From: Rhodosorus marinus CCMP1338
Taxonomy: Eukaryota > Plantae > Rhodophyta
Length of the DNA stretch: 64,000 nucleotides
Assembly (NCBI GenBank): GCA_029953675.1
Contig: JAMWBK010000003.1
Location: 3,100,001 to 3,164,000 of the forward strand
Reading direction: 5' to 3'
The translations under genes and the position numbers were made by a program. Below are positions 3,001-51,816 of this stretch, piece by piece. The stretch's first letter is position 1. The number at the start of each line of letters is the position of its first letter. The notes below the pieces were generated by a model that saw only the letters and a list, made by a program, of their open reading frames with translations, searched no databases and was not told the DNA's origin.

Positions 3001-6000
3001 GCCACAGACCCATGGTGGTCTTCACTACTGGAAACAACTATTGCCTTCTTCAATATCTCCAGGGCTCTGAGCATGGACCTCTCATCCACGTACTGTTCTT
3101 GCGAAATTGTAGCTTCTGCAAGCTCCGCCACAGCTGATATTATTCGCAAGCTACGATCAGATCGCTTTGAACCTTCCATCCCTTTCCTCATGTTGCGCTT
3201 GATGCTGCAAGCAAGATGATGACTTCGGCTCGAAGGTTGCTCTCGGACACTCAACAGTGACAATTTCGCGATTTCAGCGGTCTCACGTATAGCAGCATCT
3301 TCCTGCTCAAAGGAGGACAGTTCATCGATACGGATTTCTCGATCACGTTCCACGTAATTCGACACATACTCAGCGAAGACCTCTTCAATAATCTTTGAAC
3401 GGGTGCTGGCTTTCGGGTATAGCCCTAACATCGCTACAGGCATCTCGCGGCTCTCGGAATTGCGGAAGCCATTCAAAAAACGTGAGACGTAACCCGCGGC
3501 TACGAAGCCAGTATTCTCTGCCTCAACATCAACCTTAAGCAGGTTGTGGATTGCGACTGCCTCCATGTGTGCCTCGAAGCAGTCCGTATTGGCTCCAATT
3601 TCTGCAGCAGAACGGTCCAGAATACCATGTTGATGCTCCTTCACTTGGAGAAGCTTGTCAAGTATTTCCTTCGGCAACTCACGATATAGCTCTAGCGTTG
3701 CCTCTTGAATGGCGCTGAGCCACGGTTTTCCATGAGCAACCAACAGTCTGGATCGTAGCGGGATCTGTTGTGATGGTGGCTTTTCGTTTGGAAACTCATA
3801 TGCAACCCATTTGTCCAGCTCTACGAGGAAGTTTGAAACAGACCCCAGAGGTCCCGGAATACCTGATCCAAAGGCAAATGCCGACAAGTTGTCATTCGAG
3901 GCACACGCTTTGCCCCCCATTGCAATCTCCACGCAGCGGTTGCGCAATGCTTTTGATATGTCCCCATCCCTGGGGTCCATTGTCATGAAAAGTCGAAAAT
4001 TCCGATGCGGTCGAAAAACTTGTGGATCGCCGTTGTCGTCCGGTGGTGCTTCCGCAAGGATACTTTCGCCACCAGGCTTCTCGAGAAGAGGATTCAATCT
4101 GTCCAAAACGGCATGGGGAATCTGGAAAAGCTCATGCGTATTAGATCCGTAGGTTTTGATCACAAATGCTTGCGTGTTTCGACGATTCCATATTTCTTCG
4201 ACAAGTACCTGGTTAGCATTCCTCAACAAGACCCAATCACCACGTTCAGCTGCTTGAACTAGTTCGCTTCGGGTCCATCGGAACGCCGCCCCGTCGGAAA
4301 TTGGTATCGAATCTAATTGCTCCCGGATACGCGACAATCCTGAAGAATCATGCGAGCTCAAGCGAGAGCACACGTCAAGGAGTGCCCGAATCTGTTCCAG
4401 CAACGATTCGTCATGAAGCTTGCCATTGTAGTAGGCCTTTACCTATCAACGCAAGGGTTCACCAAAATCAGCGACCGAGCAATCTCCGCAACGAAACCAA
4501 AGACTTGTGAGAAAGCCAGGAAGCTAGGGTTTCCAACCCACCGCGTTATCAGCAGAGATCCTCGCGTGTTCAACATTCGCTGCTCCAACATCATCTGCGT
4601 CGGAAATTAGGCTGCGTACTAAATGTGAGGCTATGCTGTCAACCTTTGACTTCACTTCTAGGAACCCCTTCATTTGATTGTGCTGCTCATACCCGCCCAG
4701 CAGGTCACTTGTGTCAGAAGCGGAGGACAGCCATACCTAACCATTCGGAGTATTCGAGGGAAAAAGAGTTTGTGTTAGAGATATAACAGGGCAGGTTTTC
4801 TCTTTGGACTTACGGACCTGCCTAAGCTGAACTCCACAAATGTTGGCAAACGCGTTGAGAAGCGATTCCTTGCCGGAATCAGAAACACCTCTCAGGCAGA
4901 CAGGCCAGCAATGCCCCTAAAGAAACCAAAAAGAAGGAGCATTTAGCTACCAGGGCAAAAGGCTCTTGTTTAGAAATGGCCAGCTTACCACGGATAACGC
5001 GATGGAACGGAGGTGACCCAGTTGGGAGTTGAGAATCTGTGGATGCGGCTTCAGACCAGGTCTAAACGCGTCCTCAGGCAAATAGTCACCTCTAGGAAGT
5101 GTTTGCGGGCCAATCGTCAGAGTTTTTGCGCTGATTTGAAGCCTCGGTTCTTCCTCAAAGATGGCACAGTAGCCGAAGGCCTTTTCGAATATTCGCCGGG
5201 ACACCTCTTGGATCTCGTCCCCGTCGTTACCACTCAGGACGAGTCGTTTCCGGATCAACGTGTCATATACATCTTCAACGCTCACCGTAGACTTTCGCAA
5301 CTCAACCCACCGCAAAACATCGCGGAGGTTTAAGTCCAGCAAACCCTGCTGGTAAAGCTCGCGCATCAACACTGACAAGGAGGTTAGCTCTTGTGGCTCA
5401 ACCCATGGGTAAAGCGTACTAGCAATAAGCACAATGTCCGTGTCATCCAGTCGACGCACGTAAACTCTCGTGAACCTGTTTATAAAGCTTTGGGGTAGAC
5501 GCCTTCTTCCACCCCCCTCGTTCGCTGGATTTTGAGCACCGAAAAGTCGGAATCCGTTCGCAGCTTTTACCTCTCGCTGCAGCTCGGGAATGAAAGCAGA
5601 CTGTCTGTGGTCAAGTACAGAGTTCAACCCCTCGAGAACAGACTGTGATGCTAGGTTCAACTCATCTAGAAGAATCCAATGACCACCTCGCATAGCGCTC
5701 AGCAGGGGTCCTTCCTTAAACCTGAACTTTCCAGGTATGGCAGTTGGAACGTCACATCTACAACGGCACGAGCAAACAAAGCTTTCAGACTCTCTTGCTA
5801 TACATTTTGCTCTACAAGAAAATGCTGATTGACAAAAAAAAATTTGCGAGGATCACTACCCGAGGAGGTCAGCCATTTCAGTGTGCTCCGACAAGTTAAC
5901 CCGCACCAGGAAGTACCCGCTGGCTTCAGCGAGCGCTTCAACCATGGACGTCTTGCCTACTCCTGGCGGCCCTTCAAGCAGAATAGCCCTTGGCAACAGG

Positions 6001-9000
6001 AACGCCCGTGCCACACGAGCACAGTTTCCAGCAGTACCTCGTGTATTGTATGCGTACCTGTTCGAGACGGCCGATGTGAGATGTTACGTCGCAATGGAAC
6101 CGCATCTTGGCCTTGGCATAAAAAAAAGCGTGGGCCTTACCTTAAGGCTTCCGTTTGGTTTCTTCGAAGGCCACGTCTGATGCGGAAAACAGCAAATTGA
6201 ACTCCTTCTTCATCAACGATCATGTCAACCGTTTTCGTGAAGTCAGCCTCTCTAGCCTGAGCCCGGACATCCGTCTCCTCGATGCTGTCGATAATCCGTT
6301 CCCATGCGAGTTTACTGATGTCTGAGGTAGGAAACCCTCCAACAAGGCTGTTGCCGGACATAAGCTCCATTCCATCGAGCAGAATCAAGCGCACTCCATG
6401 TGCGAGACCCACTTGTGGTCTTATACTGTATTGTTCTGCAGCGTTTCGAATGAAGCTGCACCAAGCTGTAATGTCTCGAAGCGACAGCGTGATATCGTGC
6501 TCCGAACCCCATTTGGCAAAGTCAACGATCACATCCGCGACCATTCTCTCTTCCGTAAGGTCACCTTGCAATAAATCTCTCGTCAGCCTCTCAAAATCTT
6601 CTGATTCTGGAGGTGGACACCATATTTCCGTGAACCTATTCTGCAAAGCAGGGGACAGCTCCTTCTTTCCAAAATCCCCTCCTGGATTCATAGTTGCGAG
6701 AACTTGAAATTTCGGATCAGCGACAATGATTTCCGCTTGAGGATCACCCCCCTTTTCTGCGAGGAACAAGGTCCGCTCCGGTTCCAACACAGAATTCAGT
6801 CTTTCTGCCACAGCATGGTCAGCCATGTTCAGCTCATCGAGTAGAAGGCAGGATCCGTCGCGCATGGCTGCTACAAGTGGCCCATCACACCATTCAAACA
6901 GCTTACCGGAACTTCTATCAGTAGTCCTCGTCGGTCGATAACCACCGAGGAAATCCGATGCTTCTGAATTGCGATGGAGGTTGACAGTGTACAGAGATAC
7001 TCCGAGCGCCTCGGAGACTACTTGGCACGCCGTAGTTTTGCCTCCGCCGGTTGCGCCTACGAGAAGCGCTGGTTCTCCGTGAGTTGCGCATTCCCAAGCG
7101 AGAGCGACCATTCGCATCATGGCCTTGGTCGGGTATACTTGGAGTCGCTGGACCACTTCTTGAATTGCTGGATTCGACCAGACGCTTTCGTATAAGTTGT
7201 GGCTGCAGATTGATGCTCGGCAGTATTTCTCTATTATTCTCCGTATCGTATCCACCTGTCTAGGGTCTCGCGCTCTCTCAGCCAACAGAAAAAAGCCAAA
7301 GTTCGCGAGCTCTTGCCGGTCCCTTGGCAACCTTGAAGCCCAGCGAAACAGATCCTTTGCGTGAGAGAAAGAGGCAGAGAAGTCCTGAGCATGGCGTACA
7401 TACAGAAGGTGAGAAACAGTTCTCTGGCGACTTACTCGAGCGGTAACAAACCCGTCCTTGCCTTGGAATAGTTTTGATGAGCTTCGCTCTATCTGGAGGT
7501 CGTGCATGATTGCTATCATACTCTTTGCAAAAGACTCAGGAACTCGGCCCCGGTGACAAAGGACTGCACTGAGTTCCTCGTCGGGCATACTGTTTATATG
7601 GATTTCGATGAATCGACTCAGAAACGCCTGAGAAAGCTGCTTCCTTCCACCGTACAGGCCGGGAGGGTTTTGAGTGGCAAAAAGCGCAAATTTCGGGCTC
7701 GCCTTCACCACCTCCCCGGTCTCGGGAATCGTCAGCTCTCGATTGTCGTCCAGCAATCGATTTAGGGCTTCGAGAACTTCTCCCGGGGCAAGGTTCAGCT
7801 CATCAAGAACGATCCACCACCCTTTCCGAGCAGCTTCGACTAGAGGACCTTCCTTGAAACATGGGACACCGTCCTCATTCACTATGTAACCACCAAGGTA
7901 TTCGGCGACATCTGTGTGCTCGTGGTTGTTGATACGAATGATCTTGTGCTTGGTCCTTCTTGCCAAATAGGACACCAACGAGGTTTTACCCGCCGCGGTT
8001 GGTCCTTGAAGGAGTACCGGCAGCTTGTTCGTACCGACTGCCACCGCTCTAGTGACTTCTTCCAAGGTCTTAGCAACGCTTGGAGTAATCACGAAGGCGT
8101 CGTGCTGTACCACCTCACTAGCGTTCCCCGATTCAACCAAAAAACCTCCAATTTTGATACAGTCCGACACTGAAATAAAGTCCGAAATCCTCCTCCACGT
8201 TGAACCTGCGAGCAGTATTTCCCGGGAGAGTCTGAGGACGGCATCGCGGGAAGAAGCGGGAAGAGGTGTGACAAAAGCGAGTATTGAACCCTCGTAAAGC
8301 GCTACAGAGGCGAGGTCGCGCGGGAGAAGCTCGAGCTGTCCACGAGCAAAGTCTAGCATTCTAGAGAGAGACCTCAGGCTGAAACGTGGCTTGCGACCCG
8401 CTGCGTCCTGAATGAGTCCATCCTTGGAAAGCTTGCGACAGCTAATGAAGAAGCGTGAAACTCTGTCAGCAACATTGTGATCCTCTTTCGAAGCGCTGGC
8501 GGCGGTACGATGCAACCTGGAGAGCACAAAGATCAGCAGATCATCATGAGACTCCATGTCCGCCACGAAAAATTCTGTGAACCTAGCGCGAATCGAGTCT
8601 GGAAGCTTCTTCTTCCCCATGTCTGTTGGTGGGTTCATGGCCGCGAAAATCGAGAATCCAGAATTCGCCCTTACGAACCCTCCCTGTCCTTCTGGAGCCG
8701 GCAGGCAGTAATCGTCCAGTAGACTAACCAAGCTCTCAAGCGCTTCCACAGGTGCGAGGTTGATCTCATCGAGGAGCACCCAAGACCCTTTTCGCATTGC
8801 ATTCAACAACATACCCTCTGCATAGTGAAACTTCATTGTCCTTCTCCGCTTGTGTGGAGACGGAGATTCGGTGGACTTGGCCTCTTCACCTGCCAGCACT
8901 TCCAGCTCCCTCAGCCCACTTTCTACCGCCCTCCACAGGTTCGTGACGCTCTCGCTTGTACTTCTTCTGCCGGACGGTAAAGTATTTAACACTTTTCTCA

Positions 9001-21776: not shown

Positions 21777-22291
21777 AAACGAAGAGAGACAGGATTGAGA
21801 ACAGATCTTAGTAGCAGCCTCCGATTACGTTTCATCACATACTTTCTCCTCGTGTGTATGGTGTGTGCTGTACGGCGTACGGTTGCATGGGTATAGATAT
21901 TCGCGGTGGGTTTTTTTAATGTCCTTTTTCTACTCCTCAACGGAGGTCTGTAGAGCAGTTAGATAATCGTAAGCAGGTGTATAACAACATTGTATAATAG
22001 TCAACTCTAGTCTGGACACGCTAATTCGCTTGATCATTACTATCTCACATGGTATGAGGCAAATCACACTGCGTTCCTTGAGATAATAGTTAGCCCCCGA
22101 TTGCCCATCTTACATACCACAACCCTCTTCCTTCCGCGGCAGCCCCACTTAAAACGCTGTCAACTTCCCACATCGCACATCTTACATACCACAGCCCTCG
22201 GCCTTCTAGCTAAAGCCCCATTGAAACTTCGTCAACTTCCCACATTTCCATCTTACAAAGCTCCCTGTACAAGTGACTCCATTTCGTATTT

Positions 22292-24140
22292 CTAAGGTTT
22301 TACCGAGAGCAGCCAATAGAGTGGGTACTGCAGCAAGGCGATGAACAGTAGAAAGTAGTTTCTTGTTGCGGTATCAGCGCTCGTCAAGCCCACACTCCCT
22401 TGGTCTGAAGGCAACAGAATTCTCCTGTACGTTCTGATAAGGAACAGCCCCATCATCGAAGCACTGTACAGCAGAAGCGGAAAGTACATGAACCTGGCTA
22501 TGCATCCGATCAGGAGAGACACAACAAGCCTACAAAGCCAAAGGAGCCGGGAGCAAAGAGTCAGCGAAGGGAGGCGTCTTAACGAAACTCAGACCCTGTT
22601 GTCAACAATGCCATCCTACCCAACAAACTTGTACCCTCGAAATGCGATGAAGTCAAGCCAAGGAGCACTCTTGGCATTGACCAGGTAGAATCCCAAGCGG
22701 ATCAAAAGCACTTCAAAGGTAACCACCCCAATGGCCACTGAGGCAGTGCTCGCCATTTTCTGGTCCCAGCAAGGGAGAAAGAGTATGCGGTTCAGCTGAG
22801 GCGCTCAACACAACTAACGCACAATCTCACCCGCGCATTCCGGAGTTATTACCTCTGGAGTGAAAACACCTTTAGTGCCAGAGATGAAGCCCACGAGTAG
22901 CACATACGTAACCAACGCCATGACCGGGATGTAGAGATCAGGTGCATTCACATCATCCCTCGGAATCGAACGTGAATATTGTTCGTCTGTGGTTGGCTGA
23001 TTGTAGTTGCTCGAATCGATTGTTTTCCTCTGCCACGTCTAAAAGAAACAACCGAAGACGTTTAGGGTGTTTTGTTTAGAGACGAGAACGAATGGACGGA
23101 GCAGATTCAACCCTTCGTCCGAATGAACGTGACTTGCCTTGTTCATGAACGGACAAAGAATGAGGAAAAGTTTCTTCAAGACGTAACGATTGTCTACGGC
23201 AAAATACGGTTTGGGCACTCTGAAAAACCCTTTCACCTGAGAAACAGGATAGGCGGGAGGAGCGAAAGGGAGTTAGAACAGGCTTTGAGACACGTTGCGC
23301 TTTTGATATTGAGTTCTTCAGCGTACCTGTTCTTGATTGTTGTTCATCAACTGCTTCCCATACTGCGGAATAAACTGCGATGATACTGTTGCGAACATCT
23401 GCTGGGCGAAATTGTTGTCATTCGGTTGAAACCCCAGGATGTTCGGAATGCCGGGCTGCGCCTGGCCTCCTGGCTGAAAGTTCGGCTGTGGAGGTTGTTG
23501 CTGCTGTTGTTGCTGCTGTTGTTGCTGTTGCATGGGCACTGGCTGAAATCCAGGATTCTGCTGTTGTGGTGCGGAATTGTCCATCATCCCCTGCTGATTG
23601 GGCTGCGAAAAGCTTGGTCCTGGCACAAAATTATTCTGCATCGGCACAGAGTAGTTCATCGGTGCAGCCTGGTTCGGTTGCATTCCCGGCTGCATCATCG
23701 GATTTGCCGGTGCAGAGTTCTGAGGGGCATTGTAAAAACCTCCACCAGCTTGTCCTGAGCTCACATAAGGGTCTACTGGCATTCCGTGACTTGGAGGCCG
23801 TTGCGATCTCGAATAAGGATCTGCTCCCATTCCTTGACTCGGAGGCCGTTGTGAGCTCGCGTAAGGATCTTTTCCCATACCTTGACTTGGAGGTCGCTGA
23901 TTTCCAGGCATAAACGGACCTGGTTGATTCATATTATTCGGTGGTTGCCCGCCTAGTATTTTACAGGGTGAAAAATCCGAACGTCAGGACCAAGACAACC
24001 CAACCTAGACTCAACCCCTTGCAACAACCAAGGAGAGCCTTGAGACTCGCTTTCCAGAAGCGAATCGAAACTCGAAACTTACCGTAAGGATTTCGATTCG
24101 CATTTGAATCTCCCGAGTTGTAAAACTGCTGATTTGACAT
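22292..24140 (-). CDS. YIF1: YIF1/Hrf1 ER-Golgi trafficking membrane protein with long P/Q-rich N-terminus
   Basis: [47 protein letters not shown] and C-terminal TMs ending QYPLYWLL. Exon 1 (ATG 24140, MSNQQFY...NPY) splices in phase 1 to [12 protein letters not shown]. Confidence 0.9.
23495..23530 (-). repeat. CAA/CAG poly-glutamine tract (about 12 Q) in the YIF1 N-terminus
   Basis: The ttg/ctg triplet run on the + strand reads MQQQ...PP on the - strand. Confidence 0.9.
23757..23900 (-). repeat. Three coding 48-bp tandem repeats, QRPPS(Q/H)GM(G/P)xDPYxxS, in YIF1
   Basis: Visible in ORF 23318-23932: [16 protein letters not shown] / [16 protein letters not shown] / [16 protein letters not shown]. 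Confidence 0.85.
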
Positions 24141-39016: not shown

Positions 39017-40598
39017 CTACCTGAGATATTCCAATGCATCACTGATGATCGTTCCTCCACGATCCAGTAGGCTCCGGCGCCAATCACAAGACGAGACTCG
39101 ATAGAACATGTCCCTTAGCCAAAGAGCTGCAGGCGACCTCATCATCGGTGCCCAGTGCGTCGCGGCGTTCTCATACCTCATAACTATGCTAATCAAGAGT
39201 GTTGGATAAGTACCAAACTCATGGCACACTGGAACGGCCTATTTCACAAGTAGTCCACACAGAGCAGACAGCCCTCAGGTCAATAGCTGGCCGAAGCTGA
39301 TTCACCACTGCAAACCTGGGATTTGCAAACAAGTACTCACAACTGCTGCTTTTGGGAAGAGTGAACTGAGTACGCCGACACCAACATCACCGACAACGTC
39401 ATCATATCCGATCATTTCACCCTCCCCCATCCCAACGACATGATCTGACTCGCTGCAGAAGATCTCTTTGCCCAGGGGCATCGCTGACTGAGGCACGGCC
39501 ACCGTATCATACCCAGATGGACCCAAACCGGTGTGAACATCGACCAGGATGACCTTCTCAACTTTGGCGAGGCCCTGAAGAAACGTGGGAACCGCACGAA
39601 TGTTCAAATTTTTGTGGTCAATGCCGACGATAGAGTTCACGCCGTGTGCGCGTTGCAGGGCGACCTACCTTAGCTCCGCCCAGGATGCTGGTCAAAGTTT
39701 CTGGAAGCAATTTATTGGATGGTTCTAGCTTATCACCGCCGTACCACAGTCCGCGTTTTTTTTGGTATGTTCCTGTAAGCAGCGCCTTCCGAGTGAATTT
39801 ACTACCTCGCCACGCACGCTGGGGAGATTATGAGCATTCAGAACTGAATCGCCAGATGGGAGGTTTTGACACGCTTACTTGCAGAACAGCTCCAGCGATT
39901 GAAAGTAGGTCAAAGTAGCGAGGCACGTATGCTGGGTTTAGGTACCACTCGAAGTCTTCATATCCATGCTGATTTGGGTCTGCTGATAACCGATCAGCTC
40001 TCTGCTCGTCTGTGAGAAAATTTCTATTGAGGTCAACGTTGTTCTCGTTTGTCCTGCGAAGCTAGAGAACGTACGAAGGAAAGGAAAGGGTTACTCTGAC
40101 GTGTAGGTAGTCGAGGACTAGTGGGCGGGCAGAATATGTCCACTTTTAAGTCCGGTGAACATGCCCTACCGCTGCGAATCCGTACGGATTAACCGCATGC
40201 ACGAAGATAATAGTCGGGTCCTTTGATGGATCCCACGGCTGGGCTTTAGAGCTTCGCAAGAACGCGGATTGGATAGCAGATCCAGCAAAACCCTCCACAC
40301 CGTGCGTTCCGCCCAGGTGTATCAAAACTCTGTCGGATCTTCCATTTTTCACGGCAAAGTCCATGATTAGCCCAGCCCGATTTTGTTCATCGAGTGGCAC
40401 GGAAACGAGCCGATCCGCTCCCCACGCTCTGGCGCTTTCCAAAAACAATCGCCTCGCATCGTTGTAGTTGTCGCTGAAGGTCTCGTCGTAACCTGTCCCA
40501 CACTTACCATACCCAGACCCAGCCTGCGTATTGTACCAAATAGCTGCACCGATTGCGATCAACCCTATCGCAACAGACCACATCCCGTCCTTCTTCAT
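39017..40598 (-). CDS. DUF2817 (M14-carboxypeptidase-like) protein with N-terminal signal/anchor
   Basis: FSDNYNDARRLF, GTHGVEGFAGSAIQ, VHAVNPYGF, ENNVDLNRNF, VDVHTGLGPSG, EFGTYP, YENAA.HWAP. The HGVE...NP.G...N.VDLNRNF...D.HTG order is the M14-like zinc motif pattern. Confidence 0.82.
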
Positions 40599-42970: not shown

Positions 42971-43238
42971 GTTTTCCATGGACTCATCCATCTATACATC
43001 GTTTTCCTGTTGAACTATTGTTCACCAGATCTGTCGGAGCGACCGGGCAATGTCTTTTGACGCCAGCCATGGTCGATCTATAAGTTGAGCTGAAACGAAC
43101 GGAGCTGACCTGCCGTTTTCCATGGACTCATCCATCCACTACTGTTCACCACATCGGTGGGAGCAACCCAGCAATGTCTTTTGACGCCAGCCATGGCTGA
43201 GCTAGGTTGAGCTGGAACGAAAGGAGCTGACCTGCCGT
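42971..43238. repeat. Imperfect direct tandem repeat, 144 bp and ~123 bp copies
   Basis: Shared blocks gttttccatggactcatccatc, gcaatgtcttttgacgccagccatgg and ggagctgacctgccgt; copies start at 42971 and 43115. Confidence 0.9.
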
Positions 43239-43526: not shown

Positions 43527-44440
43527 ATGGTTGGGTATGGATTTGTAGTTGGTCATCATCAATCCCTGTTAGGACAGAAGGAGGGAAAAGATTCAGCTTG
43601 TCAGAGGAGGTCGGCAAGTTCATTTCGGGAATGGAAAACCCCTAGAGCGAGTTTGGAGGAAAATGAGACGTCGACCGGTGGGAACGGCACAGTGAAGCTG
43701 AATCTATCCAGAGGTGTTTGGTACTTTGCGTATGGATCGAATCTATCTCCACGAAAGTTTGGCGAGGAAGCTTCAGCTCTCGGTGGCCGGCGTATCAAAT
43801 ACATGGAAGCGAGAAGAGTCCGGCTTCGGGACTACCGGATGGTGTTTGACTGTCCAGGAATTCCTCCATTTGAATCAGCTATGGCCAACCTGAGAGAAGA
43901 GCCCGGGGCGACCTCCCACGGTGTCATCTACTTGCTTTCCAAGGAGTCGTTTGGCAAGTTAAGAGCTTCTGAAGCGTTTCCAGTGGAGATAACCGTCAAG
44001 GTACTGATATAAGATGCATCCTCAGGGCCAAGCAACTACATGGTCTGGGGGGACTTTGTCCTGGTTATTAATCCATGCTCCGTGGAACGGCTCAGATTTT
44101 CATGGCAAGATTCTCACAAACAATGGGCTTGTTGGTTCAGGTAACAGACGATGATGGGATCCAGCGGGAAGTGCAGACGTTCAAATTTCCATCTTCAAGG
44201 GAATCAGAAAAGGCAGGGCCCTCGGAAAGATATCTGCGGATTATCCACAACGGGGCGAGATACTGGGGTCTTGAGAATGAGGATGAGCTTTTGAGACTGC
44301 TGAGGAAGCCGCGATCTTCAGTCACAAAGTTCATGTATGATGTTACGAACTTTTCCACGGGCGTGACGCAGGGTATGTTAGTCGTGTCCTGTGTTCACCA
44401 ATTCCTTCATTTTTCTCCCGAATTGTAAGATCTTGGTTGA
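43527..44440 (+). CDS. Gamma-glutamylcyclotransferase-like (GGCT/GliK-type) domain with transit-like N-terminus; possibly fused to the downstream gene
   Basis: WYFAYGSNL, FDCPGIPPFE.AMAN, HGVIYLL, KLRASE (catalytic Glu position), PSERYLRIIHNGARYWGL. Intron 44001-44140. Confidence 0.85.
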
Positions 44441-44444
44441 ACAG

Positions 44445-47023
44445 CTTTGATCGTCACGTATGTCATATTCTCTGCTACTTGCTGGACAGGCATCTTCAGT
44501 CCACAGCGTATGCTACGGCGGGAGGAAGAGTTGGTTCTCAAATCAGAGCCTTGGCGAGAAGGTGGCATTCGACTGATGAAGACAACGAGTGGTGAGGGTG
44601 TATCCTCGGACAAAGATCTTCTTATATATCTACCGGGCATCGATGGGACTGGTCTTGGAATCCTTACGCATGTGGAGGACTTGAAGAAGGCGTTTGAGGT
44701 GTTTTCTATAGTGATACCTGTGGACGATCGCTCTGGGTGGGACGTCGTCTGTGAAAAGGTCGCTCGAGAGATTAAGGGTCTGCTGGAGAGTACTGGACGT
44801 GATCAGGTATTGTCTTGAAGGTCATTCGGAATGATACTGGAATCGAACTGACACCCACGTCTCTGGTTTTTGGGTAACGATTTAGTTGGTGCTCCTTGGA
44901 GAGAGCATGGGAGGCGTTTTGGGGCTATTGCTCTCGAAAAACTATCCCGAGTTGGTCAAACACGTCGTGGTTATCAACCCGGCAACCTCCTACAAAAATT
45001 CAGGGGTTGCAACCCTCTATGAGGCGATAGGGAAGTCAAGTTCGATTCCACCACAGGTGTACCAACTTCTGCCGTACATCTCGCTTCCAGTGCTCATAGA
45101 CAACGTTCAATTTGCCCGATCTCTGCTTACATCTCCTGAACGCGCGTTCCACATGCTGGGCTCGGTCTCTAAGATAGGCCAGCTCTCGGATATACTGAAA
45201 CCGCCTGTTTTAAAGCACCGCCTCTCGCTGCTGAGGAAGGCGTCCTTGGGTGACGAGGAGTTGAAAACGATCAAAACCCCTACAACAATTTTCGCGACGC
45301 AGAACGATATTTTGCTGCCCTCGCTGAAGGAATCCGGACGTCTTGTTCGGCTAATTCCGAACTCGACCCGGTAAGGGATTTGACTTCTGAACCGATTGAC
45401 CGGATAAACCGTCCGCGTCCATATGTGGCTGAATGGACCTGTTTTGCATCATAACTGCTAGGATCACGCTTCGCGAGGGAGCCCATACACCGATGCTTGC
45501 ACTCAAGCCCGAGGAGCTTCAGCTCGCTAATAGGATCCAGAGAGCCATGAAGGTGCAGGCGGGAAAAGCGGAGAACCCCTCCCTTGAACCCGATGAGACA
45601 GTGGATAATGTAGAGTAAGACTTTTATCCATGAAATGATCGACAGGTATCCAACATCGCAGCTATTTCTTTGATTGCTTCCTTTGAGCTGTGCATTCTGG
45701 ATGTCAAACAGAGCGGGGGAGAAATGTGACACCGCTTTGTGTGCCTTCTTTGAGCCCGACGAGCGTTCCCTTCTCTCTCCTTTCGTTTGTATGTGGCGGT
45801 TCTCTCTTCGATGAAGATTCGAGATCAACTCGGATGCGGTCAATGAAGCTCAGAAAATGATGGACAAGATTAAGCAAATACACTCCCCAATTTTCGTGGG
45901 CATGGAGAACGTTCCTAGCAGTCATGAGAGGCCACTCTTGTTCGTCGGAAATCACACTCTGTATGGAGTTTTGGACGCCCCGCTTCTCATATCACATTTT
46001 CACGAGACGAGGCGAACACTACTAAGAGGTCTTGCTCACCCCGGGGTGTGGAACGCATCTACGAACATAAAATTCTTGCGGGACAACGGGGTCGATTCTG
46101 AAAAGATCCTGAAGACGTTTGGCGCTATGCCGGTGACTCCGAGAAACATATACAAGCTTCTGAGAGCGCGGCAATCTGTGCTGCTGTTTCCTGGTGGAGC
46201 AAAGGAAGTCTGCAAGACCAAAAAGGACCGCAAGTACGAGCTCCTGTGGGAAGAATCCTCTGAGTTTGTCCGGCTCGCGTATCGAACGAACGGGCTAATT
46301 ATTCCAGTAAGTCAGTCATCTGCTCATCACAGGCATGGACGACGATTGCTGTTGACTCGGATCCACCTCTTCGCAGGTTGCTTGTGTAGGTCCAGACGAC
46401 TGCTACGAAATAATTTTCGACAGTGACGGTAGGAAGGTCAACCGGAAAGCTAAGAAGGCGTGATCGAGGTCAGACCGCTGATGTTGGTTCTTACGAAATT
46501 TCTTGTCCAAGAAATGCTTGCAAGTCCGATCCTCGGTTCAGAGATCCGCTCCCGAGTCAAAAAGCTCGCGGACAAGGAGCGAGCGCGCAAGTGGAGAGGC
46601 TCACGGGACCTTCAGAAAGACGCTAGAGGAATCATTCAACCACTCTCGCTTCCGAAAGCTCCCCAAAGGGTGTACTTCCAGTTCGGCAAGCCCATCGACC
46701 CCTGCCAGGCCAAGTTTGAGGACATTGCAGAAGAGAGGGAGCACTGTGCTGGCCTGTACGCTGTGGTTAAGCGAGAACTTGATGGTTTGATTACTTGGTT
46801 ACTGGAGGTGAGCCTAGCTGACCGCCAGTTCAAAGCCTAGTGACATTACGTGGGGGTCTCACAAACAACACCGCCTGTTTTTGTCTGTCTCGTTGATCCA
46901 TTTTAGAAGAGAGAGTCTGATCCGTTCCGGGATCCTGCCCTCCGAATCGCGTTTGAAAAAGTGAGTGGAGCAAAAGCCCCTACGGCCTGGGACTGGTGTG
47001 ATCGGGAGACGTATTATGATTAG
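44445..47023 (+). CDS. Phytyl ester synthase-like esterase/lipase + DGAT-type acyltransferase
   Basis: LIYLPGIDGTGLG, LLGESMGG (GxSxG), VINPATS, DILLPS, LFVGNHTLYGVLD, LLFPGGAKE, PQRVYFQFGKPI. Last exon KRESDPFRD...YYD* ends at 47023. Confidence 0.92.
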
Positions 47024-47101: not shown

Positions 47102-48198
47102 TCATCTCGCGTGAGTCGGATAACTACCAAGTACGCGGAAGTAGGGCCTAGTACGTGTGCAAATAAAACGTTGGAAGAACATGGTAGGAAGGTCATTAGA
47201 GAAATGAAGCCTTAAATCCGTGCTCTTCTGTGTGGCGGTAGATTTCGGTGTGGGTGGGTGTGTGGCAGGACGTACGTGATCTGCTGTAGTAGCGTAAACG
47301 CAGTTTGCGTTTTTGGATCGTTGTAGTCTGCGGCAATGTCAATGTAGAACACATATTCCCATATCTTATCTTCTTCGCCGTCATTCTCGGCCGTGGACGG
47401 ACCTCGGAATGACCTCCGATGCCTAGACTCGATCTTTGTCATGAACAGGTCAAGAGCTGAGAATATTCCGAGAGCCTTACACAGAGCGCCTGCTTTGTTC
47501 TCCAGCGTGATTGCAATTGAAGTCTTGTAGTCGAGCCCAGCTATACTTTTAGGAGCCGCTTCCAAGGATAATATCAGGAACCTGGTAAAGTTGTGTTCGT
47601 CATCTTCGATATCTGCCTCAATGAGTTTTAACCCGTAAAGGTCGACAGCTCTTCTGCTAGCGATTGCACCTGCATTCTCAGTGAGATCCCCATCACTCAG
47701 CATCTTCGCACTGCCGGCGGTATCAAAGCCTTCGACTGGTACTAGGCCTCGATCTTTCATGTACCTGTACGACAAAGGAATGAATCGGGAGCAACCGGAA
47801 TTCTTGAGACACTTTGGAATACCTCCCAGCGTAGACGAGCGCGAAGTGCATCACCTTTCACATTGAGCAAGTGCCATAGGATGGCTGAAGACCCGCTTCA
47901 CCTTAGAAGTATCTGTTTCCTGCCTTGTCATCAGGCAATGCCGAACCCGAAAATCTAGCTCGCCAACGATATGAACATCATCGTTGGCCACCATCAAGTC
48001 CAGGTTTCTATGGATTGTGCCCGCGAGCGAATTTTCGAACGGTAGCGCAGCGCGATCTGCCTCCCTGCTCAGGAGCTTTTCAAAAACCAGATCGAAACTA
48101 GCACATGGAATCAGCAGCGCGTCCTCACCAAAATATTCCACCGCAGCAGCCTCTGAATAAGCACCAGGAATACCCTGGTATGCAATTTTCAACGTCAT
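47102..48198 (-). CDS. Prephenate/arogenate dehydratase with ACT domain
   Basis: IAYQGIPGAYSE, LPFENSLAGTIHRN, SHPMALAQC, DTAGSA, AIAS, NFTRFLIL, KTSI, TKIESR, YVFYID. The terminal exon QQIT|PYFRVLGSYPTHAR* restores the conserved RVLGSYP ending. Confidence 0.94.
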
Positions 48199-49257: not shown

Positions 49258-50431
49258 ATGAGGAGTTGGCATGTTTTGGCCCTTTTCGCCCTCTCTCTGG
49301 TCGTCCAGATCGATGGAGTTAAGTACAATTCTTTTGAGTCGGCCATGGTCCAGGAGAACAAGAAACTGGGTGGTCAGCTGATGAGGCTTCCGGTTCAGCT
49401 GTTCATGGACTACGTTGTTTCAGGAAAAGCTCATGAAAAGCTCAATGTCATAACGATCATGACTGCAGTGGGTGACTGCGAGCCTTGCAGGTGAGAAGAA
49501 AGGACAATCTTTCTAACAGAAAAGAATCGCCGATTTTTACTGACGCGATCACCGTCGGCGCAGGGATCAGGTTGCCAAGTTTGAAAACAGCGCAAAGTTG
49601 TTTCACAGACTTCACGGATTTGACTCCGGATTTCTGTTCGTTAACGTGGAGATCGATCCAAACCAAGCGCTCGATGGACAGGTCGCCGGCGCCCTCGGTT
49701 TGGAGTTTGTACCGATCGTGTACAATTTCAAGCCGACAAGGGGAGGAAATCGACCACAGATTCGAAAGGGCGATAGCGAGATGCTGCCCGTAGACGTTCC
49801 GCCAGACACTTCTGTTATCAATAGCTACATTGCTATGCAGACCAGCCGAGTGATGCCGTCAGTTATGAACGGTCCGATTCACATAGTTCCTATTCTCGTT
49901 GCGTACGAGTGGACAATCATCGCTGCGGTCATTGCAGTGCTAGCATTTTGTGCAAAGAGGGGATTGTATAGGGAAAAGAATTTCTGGATGGTCATCGTAT
50001 TTATAGTGTTCTGTTTCTCCATTTCTGGAGGGCACTACGACTTGATTCAATCCGCTCCACTTCTCGTCTTCTCCAACGGAGTACCGTTGCCCGTTTCCCT
50101 TGAAAACCAGAGGAACCAGTTTGTCTTGGAAGGGTTGCTGTGGTGCTCGTTCGTAGGAGTCGTTTCAATTTTGATGTTATCGCTCAGAGACGTTGCGGTT
50201 CAGGAATCTGTTACCCGACAACACGTAAGCATCATCCCCGTTTCGCTTATCTTCTGTGGACAGATCTATCGACAAAAAAAAGAAAACATTCTCTAAATTC
50301 GCTTGTGGGTTTTGTTGTCATCCCAGGTGCTGTGGTGTATAAGTATGGTCGCAACTATGTATGCCATCTTTGGGATTACGAGCAGAGTGTTTTCAGTTAA
50401 GACTCCTGGCTACCTGAAATATGCTCAGTAG
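49258..50431 (+). CDS. Oligosaccharyltransferase OST3/OST6 (MAGT1/TUSC3-like) subunit
   Basis: Signal peptide, thioredoxin-like CEPC, TMs, FSISGGHYDLIQSAP, NQFVLEG, ending FSVKTPGY. Confidence 0.8.
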
Positions 50432-50668: not shown

Positions 50669-51816
50669 TCAGTCTTTGCCACCCGGTTTGTCACCACCTT
50701 CCGATTGCACTTTGGCATCGCTGGGCTTGGGTTTATTCTCTAACCTTCTGGCAAAAGTTAAATAACTTGTATGAGTCATGATCTCCCTGTACGGTCGTGA
50801 TACGAGCTCCACGTCACACTTTTTTACGATGTCGTCCTTGTCCGGTATCCCACTTCTCTCTCCGGCCTGGTTTCCTCGCCCTTCGCTCACGCGTTTACGC
50901 TTTCGCTCTTGCTCGGTCTCTGATTGCGAGTAGTCCTTTGACCTAGCCCGGAAAAGCACTCAGTAGAACAGTGAGCAACTGAGAAAATATCCCTATCTTA
51001 GAGAGCTTTTTGTGTGATGGATATTATTAGTGGAGAAGCATACCTCTTCTTTGTATCCCAGGTACGGAATCCAACCGTGCTCGTTTCAATTTCTGAAAAG
51101 TTGAGTTTTGAGAGTTCCTCGTAGGTTTGTTGTACTTGTTCTACACACGGAGAGAACGTCGCAAGCACACCGTCAACTCTCAAGATCCTCTCCGCTTCAG
51201 CGGCGACATCCCATACGGCCGGCAGATCGAGGAACACTGCATCGACTGAACTCTCGGGGATTCCTTTAAATCCCTCCGTGCCAACATTTCGATGTGTCAC
51301 GGTTATGTAATCAGATATTCCAAGCTTTTCGAAGTCTTCGGTGGCTTTTTTTGCTCGATCCTCGTGAATTTCGAAGCTCACTACTCTTCCGGTGGGAGCG
51401 ACGGCCCTTGCCAAGGAGGCGGTCATAGATCCAGAGCCTGTTCCTGCTTCGACCACAATAGATCCAGGTCTTAAGTCCATTTCCGCGGTGATCACAGCAA
51501 TATCATGAGTGTAGACGATCTGCGTTCTGTGAGAAAGACTTAGGGTCCATAGTTCCGGTGTTGGGCGTAACACGATCACGAACCCAGCACCAGTTGCAAC
51601 TTTGCCTGACGCAGTAATCCATCGTCTCCCAGCGTTTTTCCCCAGAAGATCGTCGTGATTAAAAATCCCGTAGCGATTATGAAAATTGCCATGCTTCTTC
51701 AGTTCAAGGTTCAACAGCTCGTCAAACCGAGAATGTACCACCACAATGTCACCACCATGGATCTCGGATGTCCCAATTCTCTCGTCGTTCCACGAGTTGA
51801 CCTCTTGACGAAACAT
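50669..51816 (-). CDS. TRM61: tRNA (adenine-58-N1)-methyltransferase catalytic subunit
   Basis: LRPTPELWTLSLSHRTQIVY..DI, VVEAGTGSGS, SFEIHEDRA, DAVFLDLPAVW, FSPCVEQV, MTHTSYLTFA. Confidence 0.96.

Follow-up and report, generated by a model that had tools for sequence, protein, structure and literature searches.

A gamma-glutamylcyclotransferase-like domain joined to a phytyl ester synthase-type core in Rhodosorus marinus and other red algae

The subject of this analysis is a nuclear gene of the red alga Rhodosorus marinus (Stylonematophyceae), located in a 64,000-nucleotide (nt) stretch of contig JAMWBK010000003.1 of assembly GCA_029953675.1. This whole stretch is called the window below, and positions are counted from its first letter. 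The gene, at 43527..47023 (+), coincides exactly with the public gene NDN08_003693 (span 3497 nt) and probably encodes one protein in which a domain resembling gamma-glutamylcyclotransferase (GGCT) precedes a core of the phytyl ester synthase (PES) type.

The gene and the domains of its product

The gene set of R. marinus comes from BRAKER 2.1.5 (BRAKER2), run with the help of mapped RNA-seq data (PMC10250338), and the public product of this gene (P0001) is GenBank KAJ8907212.1, 'hypothetical protein NDN08_003693', with a length of 871 amino acids (aa). The original prediction, made from the letters of the window, had proposed a GGCT-PES fusion with its junction at a splice acceptor at 44444. 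A spliced construct that instead uses the acceptor at 44489 equals KAJ8907212.1 letter for letter (871 aa), and therefore the public model is already fused, by a junction other than the one first put forward. The exon chain runs 43527-44000, 44141-44372, then from the chosen acceptor to 44806, and on through 44886-45370, 45462-45614, 45817-46306, 46377-46428, 46512-46807 and 46907-47023. Its features, each with the evidence on which it was drawn, are the following, where pLDDT denotes the predicted local distance difference test of the structural model:

43527..47023, + strand: whole gene, from start to stop of the coding sequence; 9 exons, same span in the public gene call, spliced construct equal to P0001
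43527..43703, + strand: N-terminal presequence, aa 1-59, putative plastid transit peptide; pLDDT <50 for 1-59, presequences ahead of the GGCT-like part in relatives
43704..44000, + strand: remainder of exon 1, first part of the GGCT-like domain; profile match to human GGCT, YFAYGSNL at 43722-43745, candidate catalytic Glu149 at 43971-43973
44141..44372, + strand: exon 2, remaining part of the GGCT-like domain with the PSERY motif, then the beginning of the interdomain linker; AIG2_2 match at aa 132-202, Foldseek
44373..44489, + strand: intron 2 of the public model, 117 nt, GTATGT...ACAG; contains the upstream AGs 44428-29 and 44443-44
44490..44806, + strand: exon 3, linker motif GIFSP and then the start of the alpha/beta-hydrolase (LPGIDGTG); (I/V/L)(F/Y)SP in most homologs, PGxDG invariant
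44886..45370, + strand: exon 4, hydrolase core; nucleophile Ser348 in GESMGG at 44904-44906, Asp482 at 45306-45308, Abhydrolase_1
45462..45614, + strand: exon 5, which carries His511 of the putative triad, plus an interdomain segment of low confidence; His511 at 45484-45486, invariant, pLDDT <50 for 538-554
45817..46306, + strand: exon 6, acyltransferase domain with NH(x6)D and FPGGAKE; His600 at 45953-45955, PF01553, N, H, D and FPGGA.E invariant
46377..46428, + strand: exon 7, acyltransferase domain, VACVGPDD...; exon chain, alignment, match to the public protein
46512..46807, + strand: exon 8, C-terminal part of the acyltransferase domain; exon chain, alignment, match to the public protein
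46907..47023, + strand: exon 9 and TAG stop (47021-23), conserved C-terminal tail R..D.F...W.W...Y.D; exon chain, alignment, match to the public protein

The profile of the GGCT-like part matched human GGCT (2pn7/2i5t) with an E value of 8e-6 over residues 15-164 of 188, and in this match YFAYGSNL (aa 66-73) aligns to the human YFAYGSNL, as does PSxxY to its human counterpart, while Glu149 falls on the position where the mutant chain 3cry has Gln. We take this position to be human E98, the catalytic residue. Both Glu149 and PSxRY are invariant in 20 sequences. An AlphaFold2 model was built from a 20-sequence alignment and compared with the PDB using Foldseek; the GGCT-like domain, which has pLDDT values largely of 75-94 and two blocks close to 75, retrieved 3cry_A, 2i5t_A and 2rbh_A with E values of 5e-9 to 2e-8 and target template modelling (TM) scores of 0.68-0.73 over approximately 180 aligned columns. 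The domain thus displays the GGCT fold together with the YGSNL motif and the catalytic Glu. YFAYGSN(L/M) is kept in Rhodosorus, Galdieria, Cyanidioschyzon, Cyanidium and Compsopogon, and since the catalytic hallmarks are retained across so deep a phylogenetic span, the GGCT-like domain is probably an enzyme rather than a relic.

The remainder of the protein carries the features of the PES family, namely a hydrolase with GxSxG and a Ser-Asp-His triad N-terminal to an acyltransferase, a C-terminal DGAT2/PlsC-like domain and similarity over the full length. Among Pfam domains, Abhydrolase_1 scored 40.9 bits (cut-off 25.8) and PF01553 (Acyltransferase) 27.6 bits (cut-off 23), while PF03982 (DAGAT) reached 19 bits, under its cut-off of 22, and is matched in 11 of 20 relatives. 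Ser348 in GESMGG, Asp482, His511, NH(x6)D and FPGGA.E are all invariant in alignment A1, and Foldseek identified alpha/beta-hydrolase structures with target TM scores of up to 0.75. Furthermore, the core profile matched 'phytyl ester synthase 1, chloroplastic' of Lactuca sativa in a one-way search (E 4e-113, 30% identity, 92% coverage), as well as 'acyltransferase-like protein At3g26840' and, in Galdieria, a protein whose name refers to At1g54570.

The structural model as a whole has a mean pLDDT of 77.6, with all three domains confident. Residues 1-59 (the presequence) and 218-232 (the linker just before the junction between residues 236 and 237) are disordered in it, and residues 538-554 have pLDDT <50. 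The three domains that had been expected are borne out by motifs, by Foldseek for the GGCT-like domain and the hydrolase, and by Pfam scores above the cut-off for the hydrolase and the acyltransferase; the gene is not novel, as its model was already public. The presequence was correctly located as the only one, in front of the GGCT-like domain, and relatives carry F-containing presequences at the same place (MAAIPLFAPP, NAFIAPFP, (T)SFIASAP, SLAFVAPTP, MSFVFHSFP), which presumably are typical red-algal transit peptides. The presequence is accordingly marked above as a plastid transit peptide, a role that is probable.

The fused architecture across red algae

A search with the fused protein yielded homologs covering 90-96% of the Rhodosorus protein. 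An exhaustive HMMER search with the profile of the GGCT-like part produced 3462 matches at E <=0.001 and 13 at <=1e-30; among the 150 matches listed, 13 are 860-1060 aa long. Cluster look-ups attached names to fused proteins from Cyanidioschyzon merolae, Cyanidium caldarium, Galdieria partita, G. yellowstonensis and G. sulphuraria, and further from Porphyridium purpureum, Pyropia vietnamensis and Agarophyton chilense, while a Gracilaria domingensis model of 444 aa covers just the GGCT part and stops ahead of the hydrolase. Additionally, open reading frames (ORFs) were found in transcripts of Agarophyton (complete, 950 aa), Compsopogon caeruleus, Madagascaria erythrocladioides and one MMETSP entry. 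Motif scans detected the GGCT motifs in these sequences, and in the full-length ones the hydrolase and acyltransferase motifs stand in the same chain. The fused architecture was thus encountered in six red-algal classes, Rhodosorus included, and algal proteins combining GGCT with hydrolase and acyltransferase domains, which the original prediction had suggested looking for, occur across the Rhodophyta.

Genomic sequences point the same way. Both parts lie in one uninterrupted ORF in a Galdieria contig (L002) and in three Logan loci (L003-L005, L006 and L007), probably from florideophytes, and none of these four has an intron at the junction position. When these ORFs are extended upstream in frame, red-algal-type N-termini followed by YFAYF(A/S)N(M/L) appear. 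The gene calls P0003, P0004 and P0005 start too late, and the upstream sequence (L003:2-328, L006:1066-1344 and L007:3204-3554) adds the presequence to each and, for P0003 and P0005, also the YFAYF(A/S)NM motif; the database lengths of these three proteins therefore understate the true ORFs. On this comparison of sequences, the fusion is an old, fixed feature of the red-algal PES orthologs and not a splicing device specific to Rhodosorus.

The green lineage differs. No AIG2_2 or GGACT Pfam domain was present in the named green-algal and plant PES homologs (630-1040 aa) that matched the core profile, and a Volvox match to the GGCT profile is GGCT-only.

A separate observation was made on a further red-algal contig (L012, Logan SRR19164831), in which 5001-6477 contains an intact 262-aa ORF with a presequence and a GGCT-like domain (E 3.8e-60 to the family profile). 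Downstream of this ORF there are frameshifted, stop-ridden remnants of the linker and hydrolase, where PGIDG has become VGIKC and GESMGG has become FESTWL. The locus represents either a pseudogene or a paralog of which only a stand-alone GGCT is left, and it points to the possible existence of such a stand-alone GGCT among red algae.

Three acceptor sites between the two parts

Exon 2 ends with ...ACG CAG G at 44372 and is followed by the donor GTATGT from 44373, exactly as had been read originally. Both of the acceptors then listed, 15 nt apart, are real AGs with the described consequences. AG 44428-29 gives G+AT CTT GGT TGA, that is TQDLG and a stop at 44438-40, for a product of 238 aa, while AG 44443-44 gives TQ-ALIVTYVIFSATCWTGIFSPQR..., which stays in frame with the whole PES part to the end of the gene (886 aa). 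The list was incomplete, however, as it missed a third in-frame AG at 44488-89, which leads from TQ directly into GIFSPQR... (871 aa) and is the acceptor of the public model. Written in full, the 44444 reading is TQ-ALIVTYVIFSATCWT-GIFSPQR..., the insert ALIVTYVIFSATCWT consisting of 15 hydrophobic residues. The chance that 15 codons stay open is approximately 0.49, (61/64)^15, and AG dinucleotides are frequent; the acceptor observations of the original prediction hold nothing beyond chance.

Homology bears on the choice among the three. In the junction alignments, where homologs share 24-36% identity, TQ followed by GIFSP is placed without a gap, and GIFSP aligns with a recurrent (I/V/L)(F/Y)SP motif (EIFSP, EIYSP, RIFSP, LIYSP) that is present in most homologs and absent or altered in Galdieria, Cyanidium and Porphyridium. 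The 15 residues translated from 44445-44489 align to a gap in all homologs but for a low-complexity stretch of Pyropia P0007. Acceptor 44489 has a typical pyrimidine fraction of 0.65 and a branch-like TTGAT 39 nt upstream. For comparison, 10 other introns were used. Of these, 3 came from neighbouring genes, in four of which GT-AG intron sets were enumerated from known spans and product lengths; two of the four were dropped because they allowed hundreds to thousands of solutions. In this small sample, the three acceptors are not told apart by the comparison of splice sites. On the public model and homology, AG 44488-89 is most likely the main acceptor, and neither 44429 nor 44444.

Among the alternatives, use of AG 44443-44 as a real acceptor would produce the 886-aa protein with a hydrophobic insert that separates the GGCT part from the PES part and might serve as an anchor to a membrane or lipid droplet. 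The reading is in frame, and its intron of 72 nt lies within the 70-202 nt range of the 10 others. Acceptor 44489 is favoured over it because the public model, which draws on RNA-seq mapping, does not use 44444, because the insert falls in the homolog gap, and because the tract before 44444 is the poorest in pyrimidines of the three candidates (0.45). The composition of the insert is also that of a translated T/C-rich intron tail, and a hydrophobic 15-residue peptide looks like what the pyrimidine tract of such a tail gives. Exact-sequence look-ups in a collection of 15 billion proteins found neither the 886-aa product nor the 238-aa and 253-aa (intron-retained) products, which is weak evidence as no R. 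marinus transcript proteins seem to be included there. As a fusion junction, 44444 was not upheld, and the anchor-bearing form is quite unlikely.

A regulated switch would use AG 44428-29 to make a plastid-targeted stand-alone GGCT of 238 aa beside the fused enzyme, at a controlled ratio. Its acceptor has a good pyrimidine tract (detailed below), the fold of the GGCT domain is complete ahead of the junction, and the intact presequence-GGCT ORF ahead of the decayed PES remnant in L012 hints that GGCT can stand alone. Conversely, the 57-nt intron that it implies is below the minimum of 70 nt, the public model does not use this acceptor, and the short transcript, with a stop upstream of six more introns, would likely be a target for decay. 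Absence of the short protein from the collection counts against it with the weakness already noted. Conservation of the intron and its competing acceptors was not observed in relatives, as the Galdieria and three Logan loci have an uninterrupted ORF; any switch would thus be lineage-specific, and it is not an ancestral feature. We consider regulated switching very unlikely.

That the public model merges two genes, a GGCT whose end lies near 44440 and a PES that has a promoter of its own and starts at ATG 44510 (which is indeed in frame, 70 nt past the short-form stop, as first described), is extremely improbable and was rejected, given the conserved IFSP linker motif in frame upstream of that ATG, the lack of a presequence on a PES starting there, and the relatives in which both parts share one uninterrupted ORF and single transcripts. 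A scan of the junction for promoters and terminators of the bacterial type found nothing, a method that is not applicable to a eukaryote.

A proposed function and its relation to known systems

The reading that we consider likely is therefore that of one gene giving one protein of approximately 95 kDa in four parts, with 44489 as the acceptor. The fusion in a single protein, as originally proposed, agrees with the 871-aa public model, the single-ORF relatives and the transcripts. As the public model and homology suggest, splicing of the gene, most likely at 44489, would yield a single mRNA and from it a single protein, and the protein would comprise, in order, a disordered presequence, a GGCT-like domain of the C7orf24/AIG2_2 type, a flexible linker, the hydrolase and the DGAT2/PlsC-like acyltransferase. 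The splice junction would lie inside the flexible linker, which carries the conserved (I/V)(F/Y)SP motif. The presequence would direct the protein to the plastid, where the core, judged at the level of its family, would pass acyl groups, possibly furnished by the hydrolase domain, to phytol, diacylglycerol or other lipid alcohols. The GGCT-like domain would most likely free 5-oxoproline from a gamma-glutamyl compound, in a reaction tied to the role of the core in lipid or chlorophyll turnover.

Several points weigh against this reading. Acceptor 44429 has a pyrimidine fraction of 0.75, with branch-like TTCAC and TTCAT 32 and 20 nt upstream, and looks usable by its sequence; the public model and homology are the grounds for choosing among the three acceptors. 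The AIG2_2 match in the Rhodosorus protein (aa 132-202) reaches 19.4 bits, below the Pfam gathering cut-off of 27; in relatives the domain is matched in 12 of 20 at E <=0.01 (best 4.9e-15). Many other copies, including Agarophyton and florideophyte-looking Logan contigs, carry YFAYF(A/S)N(M/L), for example YFAYFSNM, in which the Gly of the motif is replaced by Phe while the catalytic Glu is invariant, and such copies may have an altered GGCT chemistry or specificity. Compared with the N-termini of its relatives, that of Rhodosorus, MVGYGFVVG..., resembles red-algal transit peptides less closely, and with a predicted TM score (pTM) of 0.46 the arrangement of the domains is not predicted by the model. 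Finally, the functional link between the GGCT domain and the PES core is one that we infer.

Arabidopsis PES1 (At1g54570) and PES2 (At3g26840), together with plant and green-algal PES/ELT proteins (Chlamydomonas PES-alpha and PES-beta, for example), have in common with the red-algal proteins an alpha/beta-hydrolase followed by a DGAT2/PlsC-like acyltransferase. The likeness extends to approximately 30% identity over >90% of the core with proteins named after PES1 or PES2, to Ser-Asp-His, NH..D and FPGG, and to an N-terminal presequence. Unlike the plant and green PES, the red-algal proteins have an additional GGCT-like domain of approximately 160 residues and a linker between the presequence and the hydrolase. 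Plastoglobule location and acyltransferase activity are features of PES enzymes; in the red-algal members both are putative.

Human GGCT (C7orf24; 2pn7, 2i5t, 2rbh, 3cry), of the AIG2_2/GGACT superfamily, has the same fold, YFAYGSNL, catalytic Glu and PSxxY. In contrast to it, with which identity is approximately 22%, the red-algal domain is fused to a lipid acyltransferase behind a presequence, and many copies show the Gly to Phe replacement. The closest stand-alone relatives found are bacterial proteins of the GGCT family (Nannocystis, Myxococcales and metagenomic), at 31-41% identity and with AIG2_2 and GGACT matches; these differ in being single-domain proteins of 160-250 aa, and their gene neighbourhoods revealed no link to lipids or acyltransferases. 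In butirosin biosynthesis, BtrG/BtrH offer a case in which a GGCT-fold enzyme removes a gamma-glutamyl protecting group after acyl transfer. To our knowledge, this is the only precedent of a GGCT-fold enzyme cooperating with an acyltransferase; the analogy is limited in that these are separate bacterial proteins acting on an aminoglycoside substrate, unlike the red-algal fusion.

A closer coupling of the two activities can be envisaged, in which the GGCT domain would be catalytically coupled to the PES core through a plastid gamma-glutamyl-linked intermediate, which would serve the turnover of phytol, chlorophyll or neutral lipids as an acyl acceptor, an acyl donor or a protecting group and from which the domain would remove the gamma-glutamyl group as 5-oxoproline. 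This proposal is tentative and, on balance, unlikely; if true, it would represent a pathway step without counterpart in the green lineage. In a weaker variant, Rhodosorus might additionally make a stand-alone GGCT via 44429. PES enzymes detoxify the free phytol and fatty acids that thylakoids give off on being dismantled, and are candidates as well for the synthesis of further neutral lipids of the plastid. One of these is acyl-plastoquinol, which a 2025 paper (PMC11973298) names as an unsettled question for eukaryotes. A GGCT-like domain that is fused across red algae with its catalytic residues intact may be regarded as a 'Rosetta stone' hint at a connection, in these organisms, between gamma-glutamyl/5-oxoproline chemistry and the turnover of plastid lipids or chlorophyll. 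Gene targeting is established in Cyanidioschyzon merolae, one of the species with the fusion.

What is new here is the architecture as a topic, as the sequences and the gene model are already public. Automated names each cover one half of the protein: 'Gamma-glutamylcyclotransferase' for C. merolae in UniRef, 'Acyltransferase-like protein' for Porphyridium. No description of the architecture was found in the open-access literature on PES with GGCT/AIG2 and red algae, and the domain goes unmentioned in the papers on PES that were consulted. The fusion is a moderately interesting lead into red-algal plastid metabolism, and the case also carries a caution for annotation, namely that in-frame AGs lying close together at a domain boundary are not in themselves a sign of regulated splicing.

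The neighbouring genes, according to the public calls, are a prephenate dehydratase (PDT) gene at 47102-48198 (-), an OST3/OST6 subunit gene at 49258-50431 (+), a gene for a GCD14-type tRNA methyltransferase at 50669-51816 (-) and one for a DUF2817 protein at 39017-40583 (-); none of these four has an obvious functional link to the PES gene. Approximately 290 nt upstream of the ATG, 43014-43238 holds two tandem copies of a unit of approximately 124 nt that are 85-92% identical, and the 25-nt core of this unit, CAATGTCTTTTGACGCCAGCCATGG, occurs within the window only at those two places; the unit may be a duplicated element of the promoter region. Two further short arrays of tandem repeats, the periods being 72 and 48 nt, with 2-3 copies at approximately 80% matches, are located in a lower-GC stretch of the window at 22105-22257 and 23757-23893.

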